Assembly: GCA_001179505.1 (NCBI GenBank)
Contig: CDMY01000304.1
Location: forward strand, 62,001-126,000
Direction: 5' to 3'
Source: Vitrella brassicaformis CCMP3155
Taxonomy: Eukaryota > Protista > Chromerida
DNA: 64,000 bases
Part shown: piece by piece, positions 39,535-61,881 of the stretch
How the letters are laid out: the number at the start of each line of letters is the position of its first letter
How positions within the stretch are numbered: position 1 is the first letter of the stretch
Position numbers and translations under genes: made by a program
The notes under the pieces: generated by a model
What the model was told of the DNA's origin: nothing
The model's input: the letters and a program-made list of their open reading frames with translations, nothing else
Database searches by the model: none

Positions 39535-40443
39535 TCACACGATAGATAATCCGTGCAGCGGCTGCATGCCGCACCAACACAGCAACAGTTGAGCCACAAA
39601 CCGACCCCCCAATGCGCAACACACGACAGCCACACTCACCCCCCACTCGCCCCCTTTCTTCTCGGCTGACCCTTTCTTGGCCGTCACCACGAGCGTGTTG
39701 AGAGCGATGGTGTTAGCCAAGGCCACGAAGCCCTGCAGCGGCACCGCCATGTGGGCCAGATGGCGCCCATCGCCCCACACCATCAGTAGCAGCACCCCCA
39801 GCTTCCCATGCATCGACAGCAGTGCCGCCGACAGCACGCTCAGGGCACTCGGAGTCTGTGACGGCAGCAGCCGCCTCGTCAGGACGCACAACAGCCACAG
39901 ATAAACCGCCAACTCTCCCGCCGCGCTGACCAGCATTCGCCACTCGGCGTGATGAATGTTGCTGACGCAGCGGTGGTATGTTGTGGCAGATACGAGGCCG
40001 AAACGCGACGATAACCAGCCGACCCACCCGTGGGAATGATCGTCGCACGAGCCACTGCGCGTGAGGGCCCACATGACGTAGGTGTCGAAGAAGAGCACCG
40101 CGATGGCCACCTTGAGCAGAAGTCGCACAAGAGGCCCCGCCCAACCGTCATGCCGCTGCCCCTGCTGTTGGCTTGCGGGAAGGCGGTTGAATAGCACGTG
40201 CCGATAGGCAGCCTGCACACATGGCAGGTACATATGCATCCATTTGATTGTGTCACTCATACGCACCCACCTGACCTGTCTGTGCAGAAGAATGTCGATG
40301 CAGACGAGGAGCGTCTGGTACTCGACGTATCGGTCGGCCGGCGCACCGCACTCGTCGCAGCGCTGCAGAGAGATGTTGCCCCTGCTGTACACGCGATAGA
40401 TGAGAGCAACTGGGGCGCCACACTCCACACAGACGTACGCCAT
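39535..40443 (-). CDS. ARV1: ARV1-like sterol/lipid homeostasis membrane protein
   Basis: MAYVCVECGAPV...YSRGNISLQRCDECGAPADRYVEYQTLLVCIDILLHRQ|AAYRHVLFNR matches the Arv1 homology domain (two CxxC pairs; D-K/R-Y-x-E and YRHxLFN motifs), followed by several TM segments. One intron. Confidence 0.92.
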   Translation of the reverse strand: MAYVCVECGAPVALIYRVYSRGNISLQRCDECGAPADRYVEYQTLLVCIDILLHRQVRWVRMSDTIKWMHMYLPCVQAAYRHVLFNRLPASQQQGQRHDGWAGPLVRLLLKVAIAVLFFDTYVMWALTRSGSCDDHSHGWVGWLSSRFGLVSATTYHRCVSNIHHAEWRMLVSAAGELAVYLWLLCVLTRRLLPSQTPSALSVLSAALLSMHGKLGVLLLMVWGDGRHLAHMAVPLQGFVALANTIALNTLVVTAKKGSAEKKGGEWGVSVAVVCCALGGRFVAQLLLCWCGMQPLHGLSIV

Positions 40444-40691
40444 CCCCCTCAGCTGGCTGCAATTCGCAGATCCATGATAAACGGCAGGTGTCGGAGCCCC
40501 GGGAGCATACAAAGCACCCACGCGCGTCGCGAGCTTGAGCTCGCGACGCCGAGCCAATCGGCCAACTTCAAAACCCACTTTCAACACACTTCCTGATGCC
40601 TCTCAGCCGTAGCATCAGCTAAACACACACGAAGACAGAGCCCTTCCGCTCGTCCATCACAGCCGCCTTCCCTTCTCTCCCCACCCTCGCT

Positions 40692-50950: not shown

Positions 50951-53769
50951 ATGGCGGCGAGCAGTGCTGCTGGTAATGACGGCCCGGAGGAGAAGACGAA
51001 AGAGGACTTCCACCACCTCTTCACCTTCACAAGCAGTCATAAAGCCGGTACGGTGTGTGAATGCATGCAAGATCCGCCTCACTGCAATTGCTGCTGTGTG
51101 CGTGGGATCCATCAGGGATGGACAAGGTGGACCGGGAGAAGGCCAACCAGATCATCTATGAGATGTCCAAGGACAGCAGCTACTTCAAGAATGAGCAGCG
51201 CAAGGCCGCAGAAGTGGACAAGCAGATCACAGAGATGCTGGCGAAAGCAGACGCATATCGGTCGGTATCAGGGCAGACAGACAGGGGAGGGGAGGGGAGG
51301 GGAGGCTGGTATGCAATCTGTGCACGTGTGTACGCTGCGCGTGTGTGCTGGATGGTCAGGAACTCGCCGCCCGAGATGCGCCTGAAGGCCGAGCAGTCGG
51401 TGCGTGGGGTGCTGCAGCGTCTGGAGAAGGAGAGGGAGAGCAAGAGGGGCTCATGGTGGTGCCACGTAGACATGGACATGTTCTACTGCGCCGGTACGTA
51501 CGTCAAAACACACAGCACGACACACACATCACATCGTCACCTCTGTGTGTCGTCCTGGTTCCCTCAGTCGAGATCCGCGACAACCCATCTCTCAAGGACA
51601 AGCCCGTGGCTGTGGGCGCCGGACCCCGCTGCACTCTCTGCACCGCCAACTACATCGCGCGCTCGTACGGTGTGCGCAATGCCATGCCCGGCTTCATCGC
51701 GCAGAAGCTCTGCTCAGATAAGGGCGCTACTCTCGTCTTCGTCCCGTAAGGAGTACACACAACGACACACACACACACACACACACACAGGCAGGCAGGC
51801 AGGCAGTGTGCTTGCATTTCATTCGTTTCCCTGCTTGTGGCTGTGTTGTTCAGGCCTAGAATGAACAAATACGCCGAGGAGTCGAAGGTTGTGCGTGAGG
51901 TATGGATGTTGACACACACATGGTGGTAGTCTGTGTGTGTGTGTATGTATTGTTCTCGTGTGTGCAGGTGTTGTCAGAGTTTGATCCTCACCTGAAGATG
52001 GGCTCGCTCGACGAGGCCGTCCTCAACCTCACTGACTACCTCAAGTAACCCATCGCCCTCATACGGAGATGGATGCTCGTTTTTCTGTGCTGATTGGTCG
52101 TCTCTGCAGGAAGAATGGTCTGGACAGTCACGAGGGCAGAGTGCAGATCGCCACACAGATACGTCAGAGGTAGGTGACGCTCCGCCCACCAAATCGTGCG
52201 GACTGCCGTCGATGAATGTGTGTGTGTGTGTGTGTGTCGTCTGTAATCATCAGGATAGCTGAGCGCACTGGAGGTCTGACGGCGAGCGCAGGCATCGCTC
52301 CCGGCCGCATGATTGCGAAGATCGCATCCGACATGAACAAACCCAATGGTACGCACCACAATACACCGAGTGGGTCCCCAATGGGCTGCTGCTGGCACTC
52401 CCTTTGTCACGTGCTCACCGATTAGGTCAGACGATCGTCGAGGAGCGTGATGCAGTGGGCTTCACGGACAACCTGAGCGTGCGCAAGATACCCGGGGTGG
52501 GCAAGGTAAGTACGTCAGCCGTCCGCTGTCTGCCCCGCCAAACACTGGGTGGATCCATCCGAGCGTCCTTTTGTTTCTGTGTGTGTGTTGTGCTTGCAGG
52601 TGGGTGAGCGCAAGCTGGAGGCGCTCAACATCAAGACCTGCCGCGACATCCTCGACAACGCCGTTCTCATCACACAGGTGTGTAGGCGAATCGTGGATGC
52701 GTCCATCTGTCCATCTTTTCCACGTGTGCGGTGTGGTGGGTGTCAGCTGTTCACCGACCCCTTCAGGCATCTGCTGCTGCGTGCGGCCATGGGTGTCGAC
52801 GGCGAGCTCAAGGAGCAGGAGCGTAAGTCGTTCTGCTGCGAGCACACCTTTGACGCGACCGACGACCGCACGAAGCTCGAGAAAGTGCTCAGGAACATCG
52901 CTGCGGCACTCGCAAGTAGGCGACCCATCACCACTATTTGTTGTCACGGATGGACTCGTTGCTGTCGTGTCCTTGCATGCGTCAGAGGATCTGAAGTCGG
53001 ATCGCATGAAGAGCAGACACGTCACCATCAAAGTCAAGACGGCCGACTTCAAGGTTCGCAGAATCGACAACACACCAGAACCTGTCATCAGCAACACTCC
53101 GTTCCTGTCCCTCTCCATGCGGCTGTATGTCAGGAGCGGAGTGTCGCGATGCAGCTCTCGCGCAACACCGACGAGACCGACGACATCGCCGCTGGCGCGC
53201 GCAAGGCCCTCAACAAATACATCGACACACACGGCCTCCCCCGCATCCCGCAGCTGGGCATCAAGTGTGCCGGTCTGAGCCGCGTCATTGGTGCACACGG
53301 AGAGGCAGCGCCTAAGGGCACCATCGACTACCTCCTGCAGCAGCACAAGCACAAGAGGGGCAAGGGCAATGACAAAGAGGGAACGGTCGCCGAGATCGAG
53401 GATGAGCAGATGCAGCCGGAGGACGAACAGATGGACATCGAGATAGCCCACTGTGAGCGACACGCGGACCCGCTGCCCGATGTCATCGACTTAGACGAGT
53501 ACGAGGAGCACCCCCACAGCAACCCGCTGCCGCCGTCATCCTCGTTCAGCAGCCGCCCTGCCGCCCCTCTCCCCCAGAAGCGATCGCGGCCCTCAACCGC
53601 TGCACAGCCCAAACCATCGGTCAAGAAGGGCAAGAGGAACAGCGTGCAGCCGGTGTCGGGGCCGATGGACGCGCTGCTCAAGAGGATGGCTGACAAGAAG
53701 GCGGGCGGGGGCGATGGGGGTGGTGGGAGCAGCGCGGCGGGTAAGGGCGATTGGATTGAGCTGGACTGA
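50951..53769 (+). CDS. POLK: DNA polymerase kappa (Y-family, DinB/IMS)
   Basis: Pol-kappa N-clasp (KA|[30 protein letters not shown]), [10 protein letters not shown]|[37 protein letters not shown], catalytic [28 protein letters not shown]|[10 protein letters not shown] and little-finger [12 protein letters not shown]. Stop ends at 53769. Confidence 0.95.
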
Positions 53770-55733: not shown

Positions 55734-57016
55734 CCCCCCCCCCCCCCCCCCGCAACACATACACACACGCGTGACTTTTCCGTGCTTACGTTCATCAGAC
55801 ATGCAATCAAAAAGCTGCGCATGGATCGGACTGCACGCGTGTATCTTAAAAACTGCTGATGACTGACTGTAGTCAGCAGGAGATCAATGTACGACAGCCC
55901 CCAAGTGACCTCTGACCTCATCACTTGCGTCGAGTCACACACTCTTGCAAGTCAGAGTCACATAGCGACGCGCGTGGATGCGATGATACCGACATGAGCA
56001 CTCAAACATCACCGATCACTGACTGTGTACACACACGCTCACACATACAAACAGAAAGTTAAAAAGATGCCCGTGTGTATCGTGCACGCACGTGCGTGTT
56101 GGTGTGAACGGACCGGTCAATCAGGCCAAGCAGTTGTCGGCCGTAGGTACGTATGAACATCGATCGACGCGCCACATACATATACACATAACGCGGACGT
56201 ACTCGTACACGGGCAAAACGACGCAACGCGCACACGCACATACCCTCTCTCTGTGACTAACAGGCATACCACCTAGCTAGCCAATTGCCAAAAGGAAATG
56301 GATGACGACATTCACAAAACCACAGCACGACTGCCAACGGGCGCTTGCGAGTCAGTGATGGGCAACAAGCGGCCTTCGTTGAGCCCCTTCCGGCCGTACG
56401 TATCACTACTGTTACATGCCACGCATATACATTTTCACACACACGGAACCAGCCCGCCGACCCACAGCCAGCGCTCATACACACACTCACAAACCCACAC
56501 ACCCTTCCCCCCCACCCCCTACACGTGCACACACACACACAGCCTCACGACCACTCACTCACACACGACGGCATTATCACGGCACACACGGTCGAATTGC
56601 AGGGAAACCTCCCCGGCCCTCTCATTGGCATGCCTACGTACGCCAACTGCAGCTAGGGACGCACTTGCGCACCCCAGCTTTCGCTCGGCAGCCAGTCACA
56701 CTATCAATCCAACGAGCCAGTAATACGAATAACGCACATACTTCCCTCCACGGCAGAACACACACGCTAGTAGATGCACTCACTCAGACAGACGGATAAA
56801 GAGACAGACAGACAGACAGATGGACGGACAGACAGACAGACAGACGGAGAGACAGACAGACACGCTGCCGGCCGGCCGTGTTGCATGCGAAGCCCAGCCC
56901 TAGCTGGGGCCGGCAATCGACAGTCTCAAAGTAGACGAAGAAAAAGAAAAGGATCCGAGCGCTTGGTTGTCTAAGCCAGAGCGATGATTGGCCGATACAT
57001 GCATCAAGTGGGCGGC

Positions 57017-60000
57017 TCATAGGACCTCGATCCCCGCAGAAAGGGGTGCGCACTTCGGGTACCCCGCAAGTACCTGAAAGGTGCAGGACACATGTGCATT
57101 CCACTCTTGTTCACAGCCACGTGTGTCATGCGCGTGTTGGCTGACCCATTGACATTTCAATTCGCCCACGCACGACCACTGCATACAAACAAGGCAGCAC
57201 GGGAGATGGCACACCGACCGACGTGGATGGATGGAGGCATCTAGTGACGGTACCTTGACTCTGTAGCGTGCGATTGATCTGGAGGACACCCCTACAATGG
57301 CCCTGGTCCCGTTGGCGCGGTCATTCCCCTCCACGCACTTGTCCGTCTGTCCAGTGCTGCATGTACACACCAACAGACACACAGAAACGTAGACACAGAC
57401 GCACACAACCACAAGGGCTACGTGTATATCCATGAGCAAAGCAGTGTGCATCAGCAAGCCATTTCTATGTCACTCACGAGGTCACGTTGCATGCTTCAAG
57501 AGTCATCCTCTGTGGTGACTGCAGGCGCCACACGCTTCCGTTGCTCTCGCGCGTGTTGGTCCACATATCCATCTCATAGCCGCTGCCAGGCGCCAACTCC
57601 TCATCCCTAATGATGTCCGAGAAGAATGCTGCATCCACCCAAACAACATACAACATTACAAATGTACACACGGGCGTCTGTTGTGGCTCGAGTACGTACC
57701 AGGACATCCAGTCTTGTTGAAGTCTGCAGCCGTGTCATTCGTAGCCGTGTCGTTTCCCCATGAGATCCAGGAGAGATCGCGGGTCACGCCAGCCACCACA
57801 CTGCCCTTGAAATCGAACTTCTTCAGCACAGACAGCAAGGCGTAAGAGCGATTCTCGCGCTCGGGGCCTTGTGGGGGCGTGCCGTTGAAAGTGGCGTTGG
57901 CCGTCCTGTTACTCGACCGGCCTGCATGCCACGCGCAAAACAAGGCAGCCACACACACCATACAGGCACCAGGGAATGAATGAGACACACGGATCTCGTC
58001 AGTGTGACCTGTCATTTTCATTACCTGACGGGCGGGCAGAGCCGCGAAGATTCCCCTCGCCCGACAGGGTTGGGGTGCGGGGAGGAATGGGCCCGCACTT
58101 GGCGAAGCCGGTCACTCTCTGAATGCCCCACACACACATGTTACATACATTACGTGGATGTGTAGAGCCTCTCTTCTCCGGTGCCACGTGTGAATCCGTC
58201 CACTCACCCAATCGCAGTCGATATCGCCCGGCATACACAACCACTGCAAATGTGTGTGTGTATGTGTGTTTTTTTAAGACAAAGCATGCATACATTCCGT
58301 GGCCGATGGATGGGCGGGGTGGGGTTGGGTAGCGTCTGGCTATACCTGGATTCTGTATTGCGGCATTGCTCTGGGCGACACGGCGATAAATACGTTCGTA
58401 CCAAGTTGCAAGGTATCGGTTCCATTGACGACAGTATCACTGGCACCTGCCGCAATGCCAGAAGCCTTCACACATTTGCCGTTCGTTCCATTGCTGCCAC
58501 AGACACATGTCCAGATGTAGACAAAGCGCTTGCGTAAGAGTTCATTTGTGCGTCCACATCCCTCGCTGGCTAAGGCATTGCTTACGAAAGCACTGGACAC
58601 GCTCGAAAGGTCATGTTCTGCTCAGACTGCAGGTTCCAGATGGTGCCGTTGCCATTGGCGATGCTGCTGTTGGCCCACACGTCCACCTCATAGCCGTCGC
58701 CGTTGAGTGCCAGCCCTCTGTTGTAGCTGACGTCAGAGAAGACGGCTGCACTCATTCATTCAGCCAAGAAAGACACACAAGGACACAAGAGATTCTATCA
58801 GCGGCAACACATGCAGACACGTGTGTGGTGTCCTTCCTGTTGCGCCGTGTATACGTACTGGGGCACCCGAGTTGCTGGCGCTGTCCGCTTGGTCTAGTTT
58901 CCCATCGGATCCACGCATTACCTCGGGCAACCCCTGGTGATGGCAGGACAGCAGGCATAGAAATCACTCACATACCCCCTCAGGCACAAGCATACCTGCC
59001 TCCAGGCCTTCAGACCCCTGTGCCTCCAGTGCGGAAACCAGCAAGGCTGAGCTATTCTGTCGCAAGGGGCCCTCTCGTGGCATTCCAGTCCTGTTCGTCC
59101 GCGCAGTCCTGTTCGTGGGGCCCTCTCGTGGCATTCCAGTCCTGTTCGTCTGCGCAGTCCTGTTCGTCCGCGAACCTACCACATGCAACACAAATCGAAC
59201 GAACACACACCACATCAGAAAAGTGCATCCAGCAGGAGTTTATGTTTGTCCCATCACTTATACACACCTGGCGGGGGGCGTCTCCGTGGCGGGGGTCGTC
59301 TCCCTGGCGGACAGCTTGCGGCTGACACGCAGCACGTCACACAGCCTCCAGTTTGCGGGAAGAATCCACCTTGCGGGAAATAGCATTTGGGGGGGTAATA
59401 GCCGGTTCTCTTGCAGCTTCCACGCGACCCACCACAATACCCAGATGGCGGGAAGTATGGATTCACTGGGTACGGGCGCCCCGGCCTCCAACGACCTGAA
59501 CCCAAGCCGCCTACAGGGAATCCGCTCGCCTGCAGGTTGATGTAGTTGTTTCTCTCGATGCTGATGAACTGCTGGATGAGCTGGATCGCTGCCTGGACAA
59601 GCGTCGGTGTCCCCGCCGGCGAGTCATTGTCGTCAGCACTGCCCTCGCCGTCATCACTGTTGTCCTCTGCTTCAGCGGTGGGCGTAGGCGTCTCACTGCC
59701 CTCGCCGTCATCACTGTTGTCCTCTGCTTCAGCGGTGGGCGTAGGCGTCCCACTGCCCTCGCCGTCAGCACTGCTGCCCTCGCCCTCAGCGGGTGTGGGC
59801 GTCCCACTGCCCTCGCCGTCATCACTGCTGCCCTCGCCCTCAGCGGGCGTGGGCGTCCCACTGCCCTCGCCGTCAGGAACGGCCGGCTGGTCAGGACTGC
59901 CCTCGCCATCAGCGGCGCATACGGCGTTTGTGTTGCAGACCAATCCCTCGCAGCAACCAGAACCCTGGCTGCATGGAGCCCCCACACCAGCACAATCAGA

Positions 60001-61881
60001 TGGCGACTGAGCGCCGTCTCCACCGCCCGTCCCCCCTGTGGTCGTGGAGGCAGAATCGTCACCGCCGTCAGCATCGTCCTGCTGCTCGCTCGATGTACTG
60101 CTCTCCTCAGACTGCTCCCCCTGCTGCCCGCTCTCGGCAGGTTGCTCCTCAGACGAGCCATCTTCCGTTGCCGTTTCCGCTGACGTTGAGTCTGGCTGTT
60201 CGGCTACGTCTGGGTCTTCTTCGTTTGGCCCTGTCAGATAAGCGCCCGACGGCTCCTCCTCTTCATTGGGCGGGGTCTCGGGCTCCCCGTCAGGACTGAC
60301 CGCTTGGTCAGCACTGCCCTCGCCCGCAGGGTCGGGTTCTGCTGGGCCTGGCTGTCCCACTTGGTACTGATCCCAGCCAACCTCGCCCGATGCCTCGCTA
60401 TCAGCTGGCTGGTTCTGCTCCTCAGGCGAGCCGTCATCTTGCGGTGATGTGTCTGCAGGGGGCTGTCCCTCTGGCGGCCCACCAACCCAGCCGGCGTCAC
60501 TGGGTGGCTCTTCAGGCTCGACAGGGGATGGCTGGTCTGCGGGAGGCGCGACCTCCGGTTGCTGTGTGTCTTGGGGCTGGTCTGCGGGAGGCGCCTCAGC
60601 CCAGCCATCACTGCCATCGTCAGGCACGGTCTCTGGCGGCTGCTCTGGGTCTTCTGGCGGGCCTTCGGGAGGCGCGTCTGGTGGCGCGTCTGGTGGCAGG
60701 CCTTCGGGAGGCGCGTCTTGTGGCGGGGCTTCAGGAGGCGCCTCTGGCGACTGCTCTGGGTCTTGTGGCGGGCCTTCGGGAGGCGCGTCTGGTGGCGCGT
60801 CTGGTGGCAGGCCTTCGGGAGGCGCGTCTTGTGGCGGGCCTTCAGGAGGCGCCTCAGCCCAGCCATCATTGCCGTCGTCAGGCACGGTCTCTGGCGGCTG
60901 CTCTGGGTCTTGTGGCGGGCCTTCGGGAGGCGCGTCTGGTGGCGCGTCTGGTGGCAGGCCTTCGGGAGGCGCGTCTTGTGGCGGGCCTTCAGGAGGCGCC
61001 TCAGCCCAGCCATCATTGCCGTCGTCAGGCACGGTCTCTGGCGGCTGCTCTGGGTCTTGTGGCGGGCCTTCGGGAGGCGCGTCTGGTGGCGCGTCTGGTG
61101 GCAGGCCTTCGGGAGGCGCGTCTTGTGGCGGGCCTTCAGGAGGCGCCTCAGCCCAGCCATCATTGCCGTCGTCAGGCACGGTCTCTGGCGGCNNNNNNNN
61201 NNNNNNNNNNNNNNNNNNNNNNNNNNNNNNNNNNNNNNNNNNNNNNNNNNNNNNNNNNNNNNNNNNNNNNNNNNNNNNNNNNNNNNNNNNNNNNNNNNNN
61301 NNNNNNNNNNNNNNNNNNNNNNNNNNNNNNNNNNNNNNNNNNNNNNNNNNNNNNNNNNNNNNNNNNNNNNNNNNNNNNNNNNNNNNNNNNNNNNNNNNNN
61401 NNNNNNNNNNNNNNNNNNNNNNNNNNNNNNNNNNNNNNNNNNNNNNNNNNNNNNNNNNNNNNNNNNNNNNNNNNNNNNNNNNNNNNNNNNNNACGGGTGG
61501 CGGCTCTTGAGGCATCGGCTCCACGGGTGGCGGCTCTTGAGGCATCGGCTCGACGGGTGCCGGCTCTTGAGGCATTGGTTCGGGATACGGATCCATCGGA
61601 GCCGGCTGCGGTTCCGGCAGATACGTTGGATAAAGAAATTGCTCAGGGGCAGGTCCCTGCGGGCCGTAAGCATCCGGGGGAGGTCCCTGAGGGAAGTCAC
61701 CACCCGGACTTCCCATGGAGTCCTGGATAACGCACAACACAACACAATACATGCAGGTGTGTCGACTGGCGCCCATCATTCATTCCGATCTTACCTCGGA
61801 GAACGACTCCCCAAGCTGCGCTGCCGCCATGGGGAGCAGGGCAGCGCAGACTGACGCGACAGTCAGCCATAGCTTCCTCAT
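57017..61881 (-). CDS. Large modular secreted glycoprotein (signal peptide, Pro/acidic repeats, knottin-like motif, NxT-rich repeats, duplicated Cys/Trp domain); candidate cell/cyst-wall protein
   Basis: MRKLWLTVASVCAALLPMAAAQLGESFSE|gtaag joins the long 59.26-61.72 kb exon. The apparent stop at 59254 lies in a phase-1 intron (CCA G|gtgtgt...gtggtag|GT TCG). About ten further exons splice with consistent phases down to ...CAPLSAGIEVL* at 57017. Confidence 0.78.
60590..61192 (-). repeat. Coding tandem repeat, 147-bp (49-aa) unit, three near-identical copies plus variant copies, running into a gap
   Basis: TTCAGGAGGCGCCTCAGCCCAGCCATCATTGCCGTCGTCAGGCACGG at 60841, 60988 and 61135 (period 147); unit PPETVPDDGNDGWAEAPPEGPPQDAPPEGLPPDAPPDAPPEGPPQDPEQ. 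Confidence 0.95.
61193..61492. other. Assembly gap (300 N) within the coding repeat array
   Basis: Run of N flanked by different repeat types on each side. Confidence 1.

Follow-up and report, generated by a model that had tools for sequence, protein, structure and literature searches.

A tandem pair of cysteine- and tryptophan-containing domains at the end of a predicted secreted protein of Vitrella brassicaformis

The DNA analysed here, called the window, is a 64-kb stretch of GC-rich eukaryotic DNA from the walled alga Vitrella brassicaformis CCMP3155 (contig CDMY01000304.1, positions 62,001 to 126,000 of the forward strand); positions are counted from its first letter. A gene runs on its minus strand from 61881 to 57017, and its product would comprise about 1,266 residues, with a 300-N assembly gap counted in. 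The last part of this gene, 59175-57017 on the minus strand, codes for two tandem copies of one domain of about 190 residues, namely copy A, with six exons and 231 residues, and copy B, with five exons and 188 residues. An earlier note had pointed to this pair as an extracellular domain of unrecognised family with conserved cysteine (Cys) and tryptophan (Trp) residues, and the peptide strings that it quoted are all present on the minus strand.

The gene is expressed and spliced. The interval 56900-59560 was compared with the assembled contigs of four public runs from three studies. The label RNA on these runs is a guess, and they were taken as complementary DNA since they hold contigs that lack every intron; runs X3 and X4 (100% of words) are not needed for support. 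The contigs skip exactly the predicted introns, with skipped ends that read CT..AC on the plus strand, equal to GT..AG on the minus strand, and no base differences between contigs and genome were seen. Ten of the eleven joints are listed, at 59268|59175, 58996|58933, 58859|58745, 58586|58493, 58208|58118, 58025|57921, 57700|57628, 57478|57356, 57254|57178, and 57146|57073. The first of these, which connects the large upstream exon E0 to the first exon of copy A, A0, is present in contigs of runs X7 and X8. The eleventh joint, 58346|58243 between exons A3 and A4, was dropped at a simple repeat and is thus not listed. However, contig record 2 of run X1 has exactly 36 letters between 58118 and 58346, and this joint is accepted since the gap in the contig numbering equals the size of exon A4. 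Thus, the predicted junctions withstand comparison with the transcripts, ten as listed joints and one by the 36-letter gap. The lack of RNA support that, by the earlier note, would have refuted the pair was not observed.

Copy A, whose start the earlier note had placed at 58945, in fact begins at 59175. Its first exon, A0 (58996..59175, minus strand, as are all exons described here), is the sequon-rich N-terminal part of the copy, aligns with the first half of exon B1, and has transcript joints on both sides. Exon A1 (58859..58933) carries W-I-R-W ... G-C-P and ends in phase 1. It is followed by A2 (58586..58745), the most conserved exon, with F-S-D ... G-Y-E-V-D-V-W-A-N ... W-N-L-Q-S ... A-C and phase 2 at its end, and by A3 (58346..58493), with K-C-V ... 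N-G-T ... Y-R-I-Q and phase 0 at its end. Exon A4 (58208..58243) is a micro-exon of 12 codons that reads W-x-C ... C-x-W, and A5 (58025..58118) holds G-F-x-K-C-G-P and a Pro-rich linker, ending in phase 1.

Copy B repeats this order. Exon B1 (57700..57921) is the equivalent of A0 and A1 without the intron between them; it holds seven sequons and W-I-S-W ... G-C-P, and ends in phase 1. Exon B2 (57478..57628) reads F-S-D ... G-Y-E-M-D-M-W-T-N ... W-R-L-Q-S ... A-C and ends in phase 2, and B3 (57254..57356) reads K-C-V ... N-G-T ... Y-R-V-K and ends in phase 0. The W-x-C ... C-x-W micro-exon is here B4 (57146..57178), with 11 codons, and both its joints are found in all four runs; a micro-exon of 11 to 12 codons with this motif is what the earlier note had described. 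The last exon, B5 (57017..57073), holds G-Y-x-K-C-A-P, with coding sequence at 57073-57020 and the stop codon TGA at 57019-57017. Directly past the stop codon lies a (GACA)n microsatellite, at 56780-56860, in the probable 3′ untranslated region.

The introns of both copies are all GT..AG and 62-121 nucleotides long, and their phases add up to a frame that stays open over 12 exons. In copy B, the last two introns, of 75 and 72 nucleotides, are multiples of three without in-frame stops. Consequently, B3, B4, and B5 also read as one open reading frame (ORF) of 150 residues (57020-57469), and retention of these introns would add residues and not truncate the product. The contigs show both of them spliced out.

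That A and B are copies of one domain follows from their alignment, exon by exon, and from their shared introns. Local alignments of A against B were scored against 2000 shuffles each, and all exceed them: z = 21 for A2/B2 (49% identity over 52 columns), 9.2 for A0/B1, 8.7 for A3/B3, 5.1 for A4/B4, 4.7 for A5/B5, and 3.3 for A1/B1. Five intron positions are common to A and B, with identical phases: in phase 1 before the domain and after G-C-P, in phase 2 after A-C-x-x-x-S, and in phase 0 on either side of the micro-exon. The earlier note was right that intron positions and phases are shared, although it had counted three. Its alignment of the K-C-V exons, with an insertion of about 15 residues in A, is better than that given by MAFFT, since the Cys then stands at an equal distance from the intron in both copies. 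This insertion in A3 and the extra intron between A0 and A1 are specific to copy A.

Each domain unit is flanked by phase-1 introns (E0|A0 and A5|B1), so that the whole unit can be duplicated in frame. At the DNA level only the core of the second exon is still alike, at 71% over 73 nucleotides, and the introns are unrelated, which indicates that the duplication is old. Taken together, the alignments and the intron pattern indicate that the pair goes back to an old duplication, within the gene, of a block of several exons with phase-1 borders. Exon A0 also contains a 51-bp tandem duplication, at 59066-59167 (2.0 copies, 98% alike), which repeats a 17-residue unit bearing a sequon and which would be a recent small expansion within the old copy A.

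Cys and Trp are conserved, as had been claimed, with six of each per copy at matching places, and the motifs F-S-D, G-Y-E-x-D-x-W-x-N, and W-x-L-Q-S are kept in both. The two copies together hold 20 N-x-S/T sequons, against 5.0 +/- 2.0 in shuffles (0 of 5000 shuffles reach 20), a fourfold enrichment, which agrees with the abundance of sequons first reported. Since the frame, the five intron positions, the six Cys, the six Trp, and the motifs are kept in both, each copy is under purifying selection. These observations bear on whether the feature could be an artefact or a decaying gene, that is, a pattern of ORFs due to chance, a pseudogene, or an error of assembly. The gap in the upstream exon, and the failure of the protein searches described below to return the gene's own product, would fit such an explanation. 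However, the junctions are supported by spliced contigs of four runs that do not differ from the genome, the frame stays open through 12 exons, the similarity of A to B is far above that of shuffles in each exon, and both copies have kept their Cys, Trp, and splice sites. We therefore regard an artefact as very improbable.

Upstream of the pair, the gene begins with exon 1 (61795..61881), which was read from the sequence as a start codon and a signal-peptide exon of 29 codons with a GTAAGA donor after it; it holds the only stretch of the gene with a Kyte–Doolittle hydropathy, KD(19), above 1.6. Its junction with E0 was placed from sequence alone. E0 (59268..61722) is a giant exon, an open frame of about 2.45 kb that ends in phase 1. 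It has 23% Pro, and tandem repeats were detected in it; it contains two kinds of repeats, Pro/acidic and acidic Thr/Pro, with a six-Cys motif of knottin-like spacing between them, and a stretch rich in Gly, Pro, Tyr, and Cys. The knottin-like motif, C-x6-C-x5-CC-x4-C-x5-C at 59985-60070 on the minus strand, scores 19.6 bits against Pfam Toxin_12, below the cut-off of 21. Seven further Cys are clustered in the Gly/Pro/Tyr-rich part, at about 59310-59435. The 300-N assembly gap, at 61193-61492, falls within this repeat exon; thus, the number of repeats and the length of the protein are provisional, and the gap may explain why no public protein was found for the locus. Several long ORFs on the plus strand (60390-61854) are not genes, being mirror frames of these GC-rich repeats. 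A scan of the window with Rfam gave no match.

No piece downstream of exon 1 reaches transmembrane-like hydropathy, and no tail like that of a glycosylphosphatidylinositol (GPI)-anchored protein was found, the C-terminus being too short for a GPI signal. Given a signal-peptide exon without a transmembrane segment or GPI signal, the product is predicted to be a modular protein that is secreted and not anchored, and that carries the two domain copies at its C-terminus. This agrees with the extracellular location that had been suggested for the domain. Disulfide bonding, also suggested in the earlier note, is supported by the six conserved Cys per copy; the β-rich structure and the lectin- or adhesin-like role put forward there would be further possibilities.

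Does the domain belong to a known family? All searches were run exon by exon, with pieces of 24-73 residues, which would reveal a typical Pfam member and not a very divergent one. In Pfam, no family was found at E <= 10 for any of eight exon pieces, nor was any NCBIfam family found for an exon piece. With the A2/B2 profile, B1, and A3 as queries, the sequences of the Protein Data Bank (PDB) gave rows at the level of chance or nothing, and the ESM Atlas, searched with A2 and B1, gave low recognition (about 1540) and no named family. An exhaustive HMMER search of 1.84 billion representative proteins with the A2/B2 profile found no relatives. Its two hits, P0001 and P0002, belong to proteins with EGF_CA/Flg_new_2 and CARDB/Kelch domains and were rejected as sums of short matches to G-D-G-x-x-D-V-W-x-N-like strands in repeat proteins. 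This search needed about 36 bits, as estimated from the E-value scale of the PDB search, and so reaches only relatives about as close as A is to B. In viral, prokaryotic-genome, and metagenome contig collections there were pattern matches only, and no relative was confirmed. Within the Vitrella assembly (72,700,666 bases in 1064 contigs), neither exon A2 nor exon B1 nor the A2/B2 profile detected a further copy besides this locus.

Accordingly, the earlier note's statement that the family is not recognisable stands for every collection searched in this way, and no Pfam match has come to contradict it. At the level of exons, the working label of a new lineage-restricted domain family fits what was found, namely two divergent copies, a shared pattern of Cys and Trp, a shared exon structure, and no detected relatives. 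Two known domains were also considered, and neither was matched. The ricin-type β-trefoil lectin (PF00652 / PF14200) has no per-exon Pfam match at E <= 10; one C-[QD]-W is visible per copy, and a threefold repeat was not seen. For the apicomplexan 6-Cys domain, s48/45 (PF07422), there is likewise no per-exon match at E <= 10, a comparison of low power with such short pieces. Domains of the latter kind occur as tandem pairs, and the Vitrella domain is like them in phylogenetic neighbourhood, in its six Cys, and in forming a tandem pair on an extracellular protein. It differs in its length of about 190 residues, versus about 120-150, and in its Cys spacing and Trp-rich motifs.

The motifs of the second exon suggest a different connection. 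F-S-D followed, after about 15 residues, by G-Y-E-x-D-x-W resembles the E-x-D-x-(x)-E strand of the glycoside hydrolase (GH) families GH16 and GH7 and the Y-E-L-M-I-W strand of GH12. The jelly rolls of clans GH-B and GH-C (GH16, PF00722; GH7; GH12, PF01670) and their non-catalytic glucan-recognition relatives are likewise secreted and about 200 residues long. Common to them and the domain is a hydrophobic strand with Asp at its end and, about 15 residues on, an alternating E-x-D-x-aromatic strand, a likeness that was compared here with the GH16 sequences of Vitrella. It is possible, though to us somewhat doubtful, that the domain is a very divergent form of a known extracellular fold below the reach of exon-sized queries, whether a β-jelly-roll (ConA-like, GH16/GH12/GH7-type), a β-trefoil, or another lectin. 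On this reading, Y-E-x-D-x-W-x-N would represent a degenerate catalytic strand, E-x-D-x(x)-E without the acid/base Glu, as in non-catalytic glucan-recognition proteins. This is the main rival in terms of classification, and it draws on the likeness in motif to the GH16/GH7 and GH12 strands, on the low power of exon-wise searches, and on the length of about 190 residues, the Trp content, and the secreted context, which suit a carbohydrate-binding jelly roll.

The tests that were run, however, point away from these families. At E <= 10, GH12 (PF01670) matches control genomes but no place in that of Vitrella. GH16 (PF00722) matches 28 six-frame places genome-wide, none of them at this locus even at E <= 10. 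An hhalign comparison of the A2/B2 profile with eight Vitrella GH16 domains gave a probability of 0.1%, and Smith-Waterman alignment of five exons with the same eight domains gave z <= 2.6; PDB sequences, as said, gave no match. Thus, unlike the jelly rolls, the domain has no similarity to them by hidden Markov model, profile-profile, or pairwise comparison. A GH16 catalytic strand with both glutamates is absent, since the copies read Y-E-x-D-x-W-[AT]-N: the second catalytic Glu, the acid/base, is replaced by Trp, then Ala or Thr, whereas Vitrella GH16 genes carry E-I-D-x-E. The domain also has six conserved Cys and, in contrast to the single-exon GH16 matches of this genome, a multi-exon structure. 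By the tests run, then, the domain appears not to be a member of GH16 or GH12, and a remote relation may exist at the level of the fold. The GH16 set of Vitrella is itself large: most of the 28 matches are above the cut-off, and many are single open frames with E-I-D-x-E (example contigs C491, C299, C347, C736, C270, C466, C418, and C788; L004-L011).

In functional terms, the main rival is a catalytic role for the invariant acidic residues. Three of these, the Asp of F-S-D and the Glu and Asp of Y-E-x-D, are invariant between copies that are otherwise about 40-50% identical, and the protein appears to be secreted; the domain might then be an active wall-modifying enzyme, a glycoside hydrolase or transglycosylase of a new family, with these residues as its catalytic groups. 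On the other hand, it has no similarity to any glycosidase family, there is no His in the two copies combined, and few other polar invariant residues are common to them. Moreover, a tandem duplication that ends a repeat rod is typical of binding modules. We consider an enzyme of this kind unlikely.

Known matrix proteins offer further comparisons. The volvocine pherophorins are algal hydroxyproline-rich wall glycoproteins with globular end domains, and the Vitrella product resembles them in its signal peptide, its long Pro-rich rod, and its Cys-containing globular domains, which are likely to mediate cross-linking in the extracellular matrix. It is unlike them in that exon-by-exon searches gave no Pfam match, the pherophorin domain included, in that it comes from an alveolate lineage, and in that both globular copies are C-terminal. 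According to Patthy's rule, extracellular modules of phase 1-1 have spread by exon shuffling and duplication in metazoan matrix proteins. The duplicated unit of Vitrella has phase-1 introns at both ends, as those modules do. Its interior, however, is interrupted by four to five introns, and the only duplication seen is intragenic; a copy of the module shuffled into other genes was not found elsewhere in the genome.

We propose, with a probability of about 0.5, that the domain is a lineage-restricted, disulfide-bonded, N-glycosylated binding module, and that an old intragenic pair of it ends an expressed, secreted glycoprotein of the cell wall or matrix. The domain would fold in the endoplasmic reticulum and secretory pathway, with three disulfides and heavy N-glycosylation. 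It would act as a binding module and not as an enzyme, its most likely target being a glycan of the wall or matrix or another matrix protein. It is tempting to suppose that the two copies, at the tip of an extended Pro-rich rod, would make the protein bivalent, so that it could act in the cell wall or extracellular matrix as a cross-linker or an anchor. The family would be restricted to the lineage at the level of sequence and would not be in Pfam.

Several points weigh against this proposal. A divergent member of a known family, with about 30-40 bits spread over the whole domain, would escape exon-sized queries, so that a "new family" means here only one that is not recognisable exon by exon. 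Binding is preferred to catalysis on grounds of architecture, and the conserved acidic residues of F-S-D and Y-E-x-D could form an active site. No data on the localisation of the product or on the wall proteome were found for it. In addition, the locus's own product was returned neither by the exhaustive search nor by word searches of the protein collection with E0 (regions 540-818 and 703-806), which returned nothing at all, the first being swamped by low-complexity words. As a control, the annotated Vitrella protein encoded by the neighbouring Arv1 gene is present in this collection. Since the product is missing although the collection has the Vitrella proteome, the public gene model is absent, different, or left out, and protein searches would also overlook a gene of a relative that lacks annotation in the same way.

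Two other reading frames of the window deserve mention. An Arv1-like ORF lies at 39538-40587 on the minus strand (PF04161, E = 3e-28). An annotated Vitrella protein matches it with 84% identity over 86% of the ORF, values that are this low because the ORF reads through non-coding parts. On the plus strand, the ORF at 52549-53766 has a weak match to IMS_C, the C-terminal region of Y-family DNA polymerases (26.4 bits, cut-off 20.7).

What the locus provides is a transcript-supported model of a large, apparently secreted protein whose C-terminal domains went undetected in the public protein collections searched, a model of use for annotation. It is also, for an alveolate, a clean example of a multi-exon phase 1-1 module duplicated within its gene together with a micro-exon. 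As a candidate new binding module, the domain is open to expression and testing and would be a sensible subject for structure prediction and binding assays. No long-standing open question is touched; orphan secreted domains are common in such genomes, and a specialist would not be surprised by one more. Chromerids are free-living relatives of the apicomplexans, and their extracellular proteins are used to trace the origin of the surface proteins of the parasites (PMC4501334). More speculatively, and with rather less confidence than we have in a binding module as such, the pair may represent a chromerid-restricted family with an undescribed fold or glycan specificity, missing from public protein sets though well expressed, and form the bivalent wall-binding end of an extracellular scaffold of Vitrella. 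If so, it would be a candidate new family of carbohydrate-binding modules from the free-living sister group of Apicomplexa.

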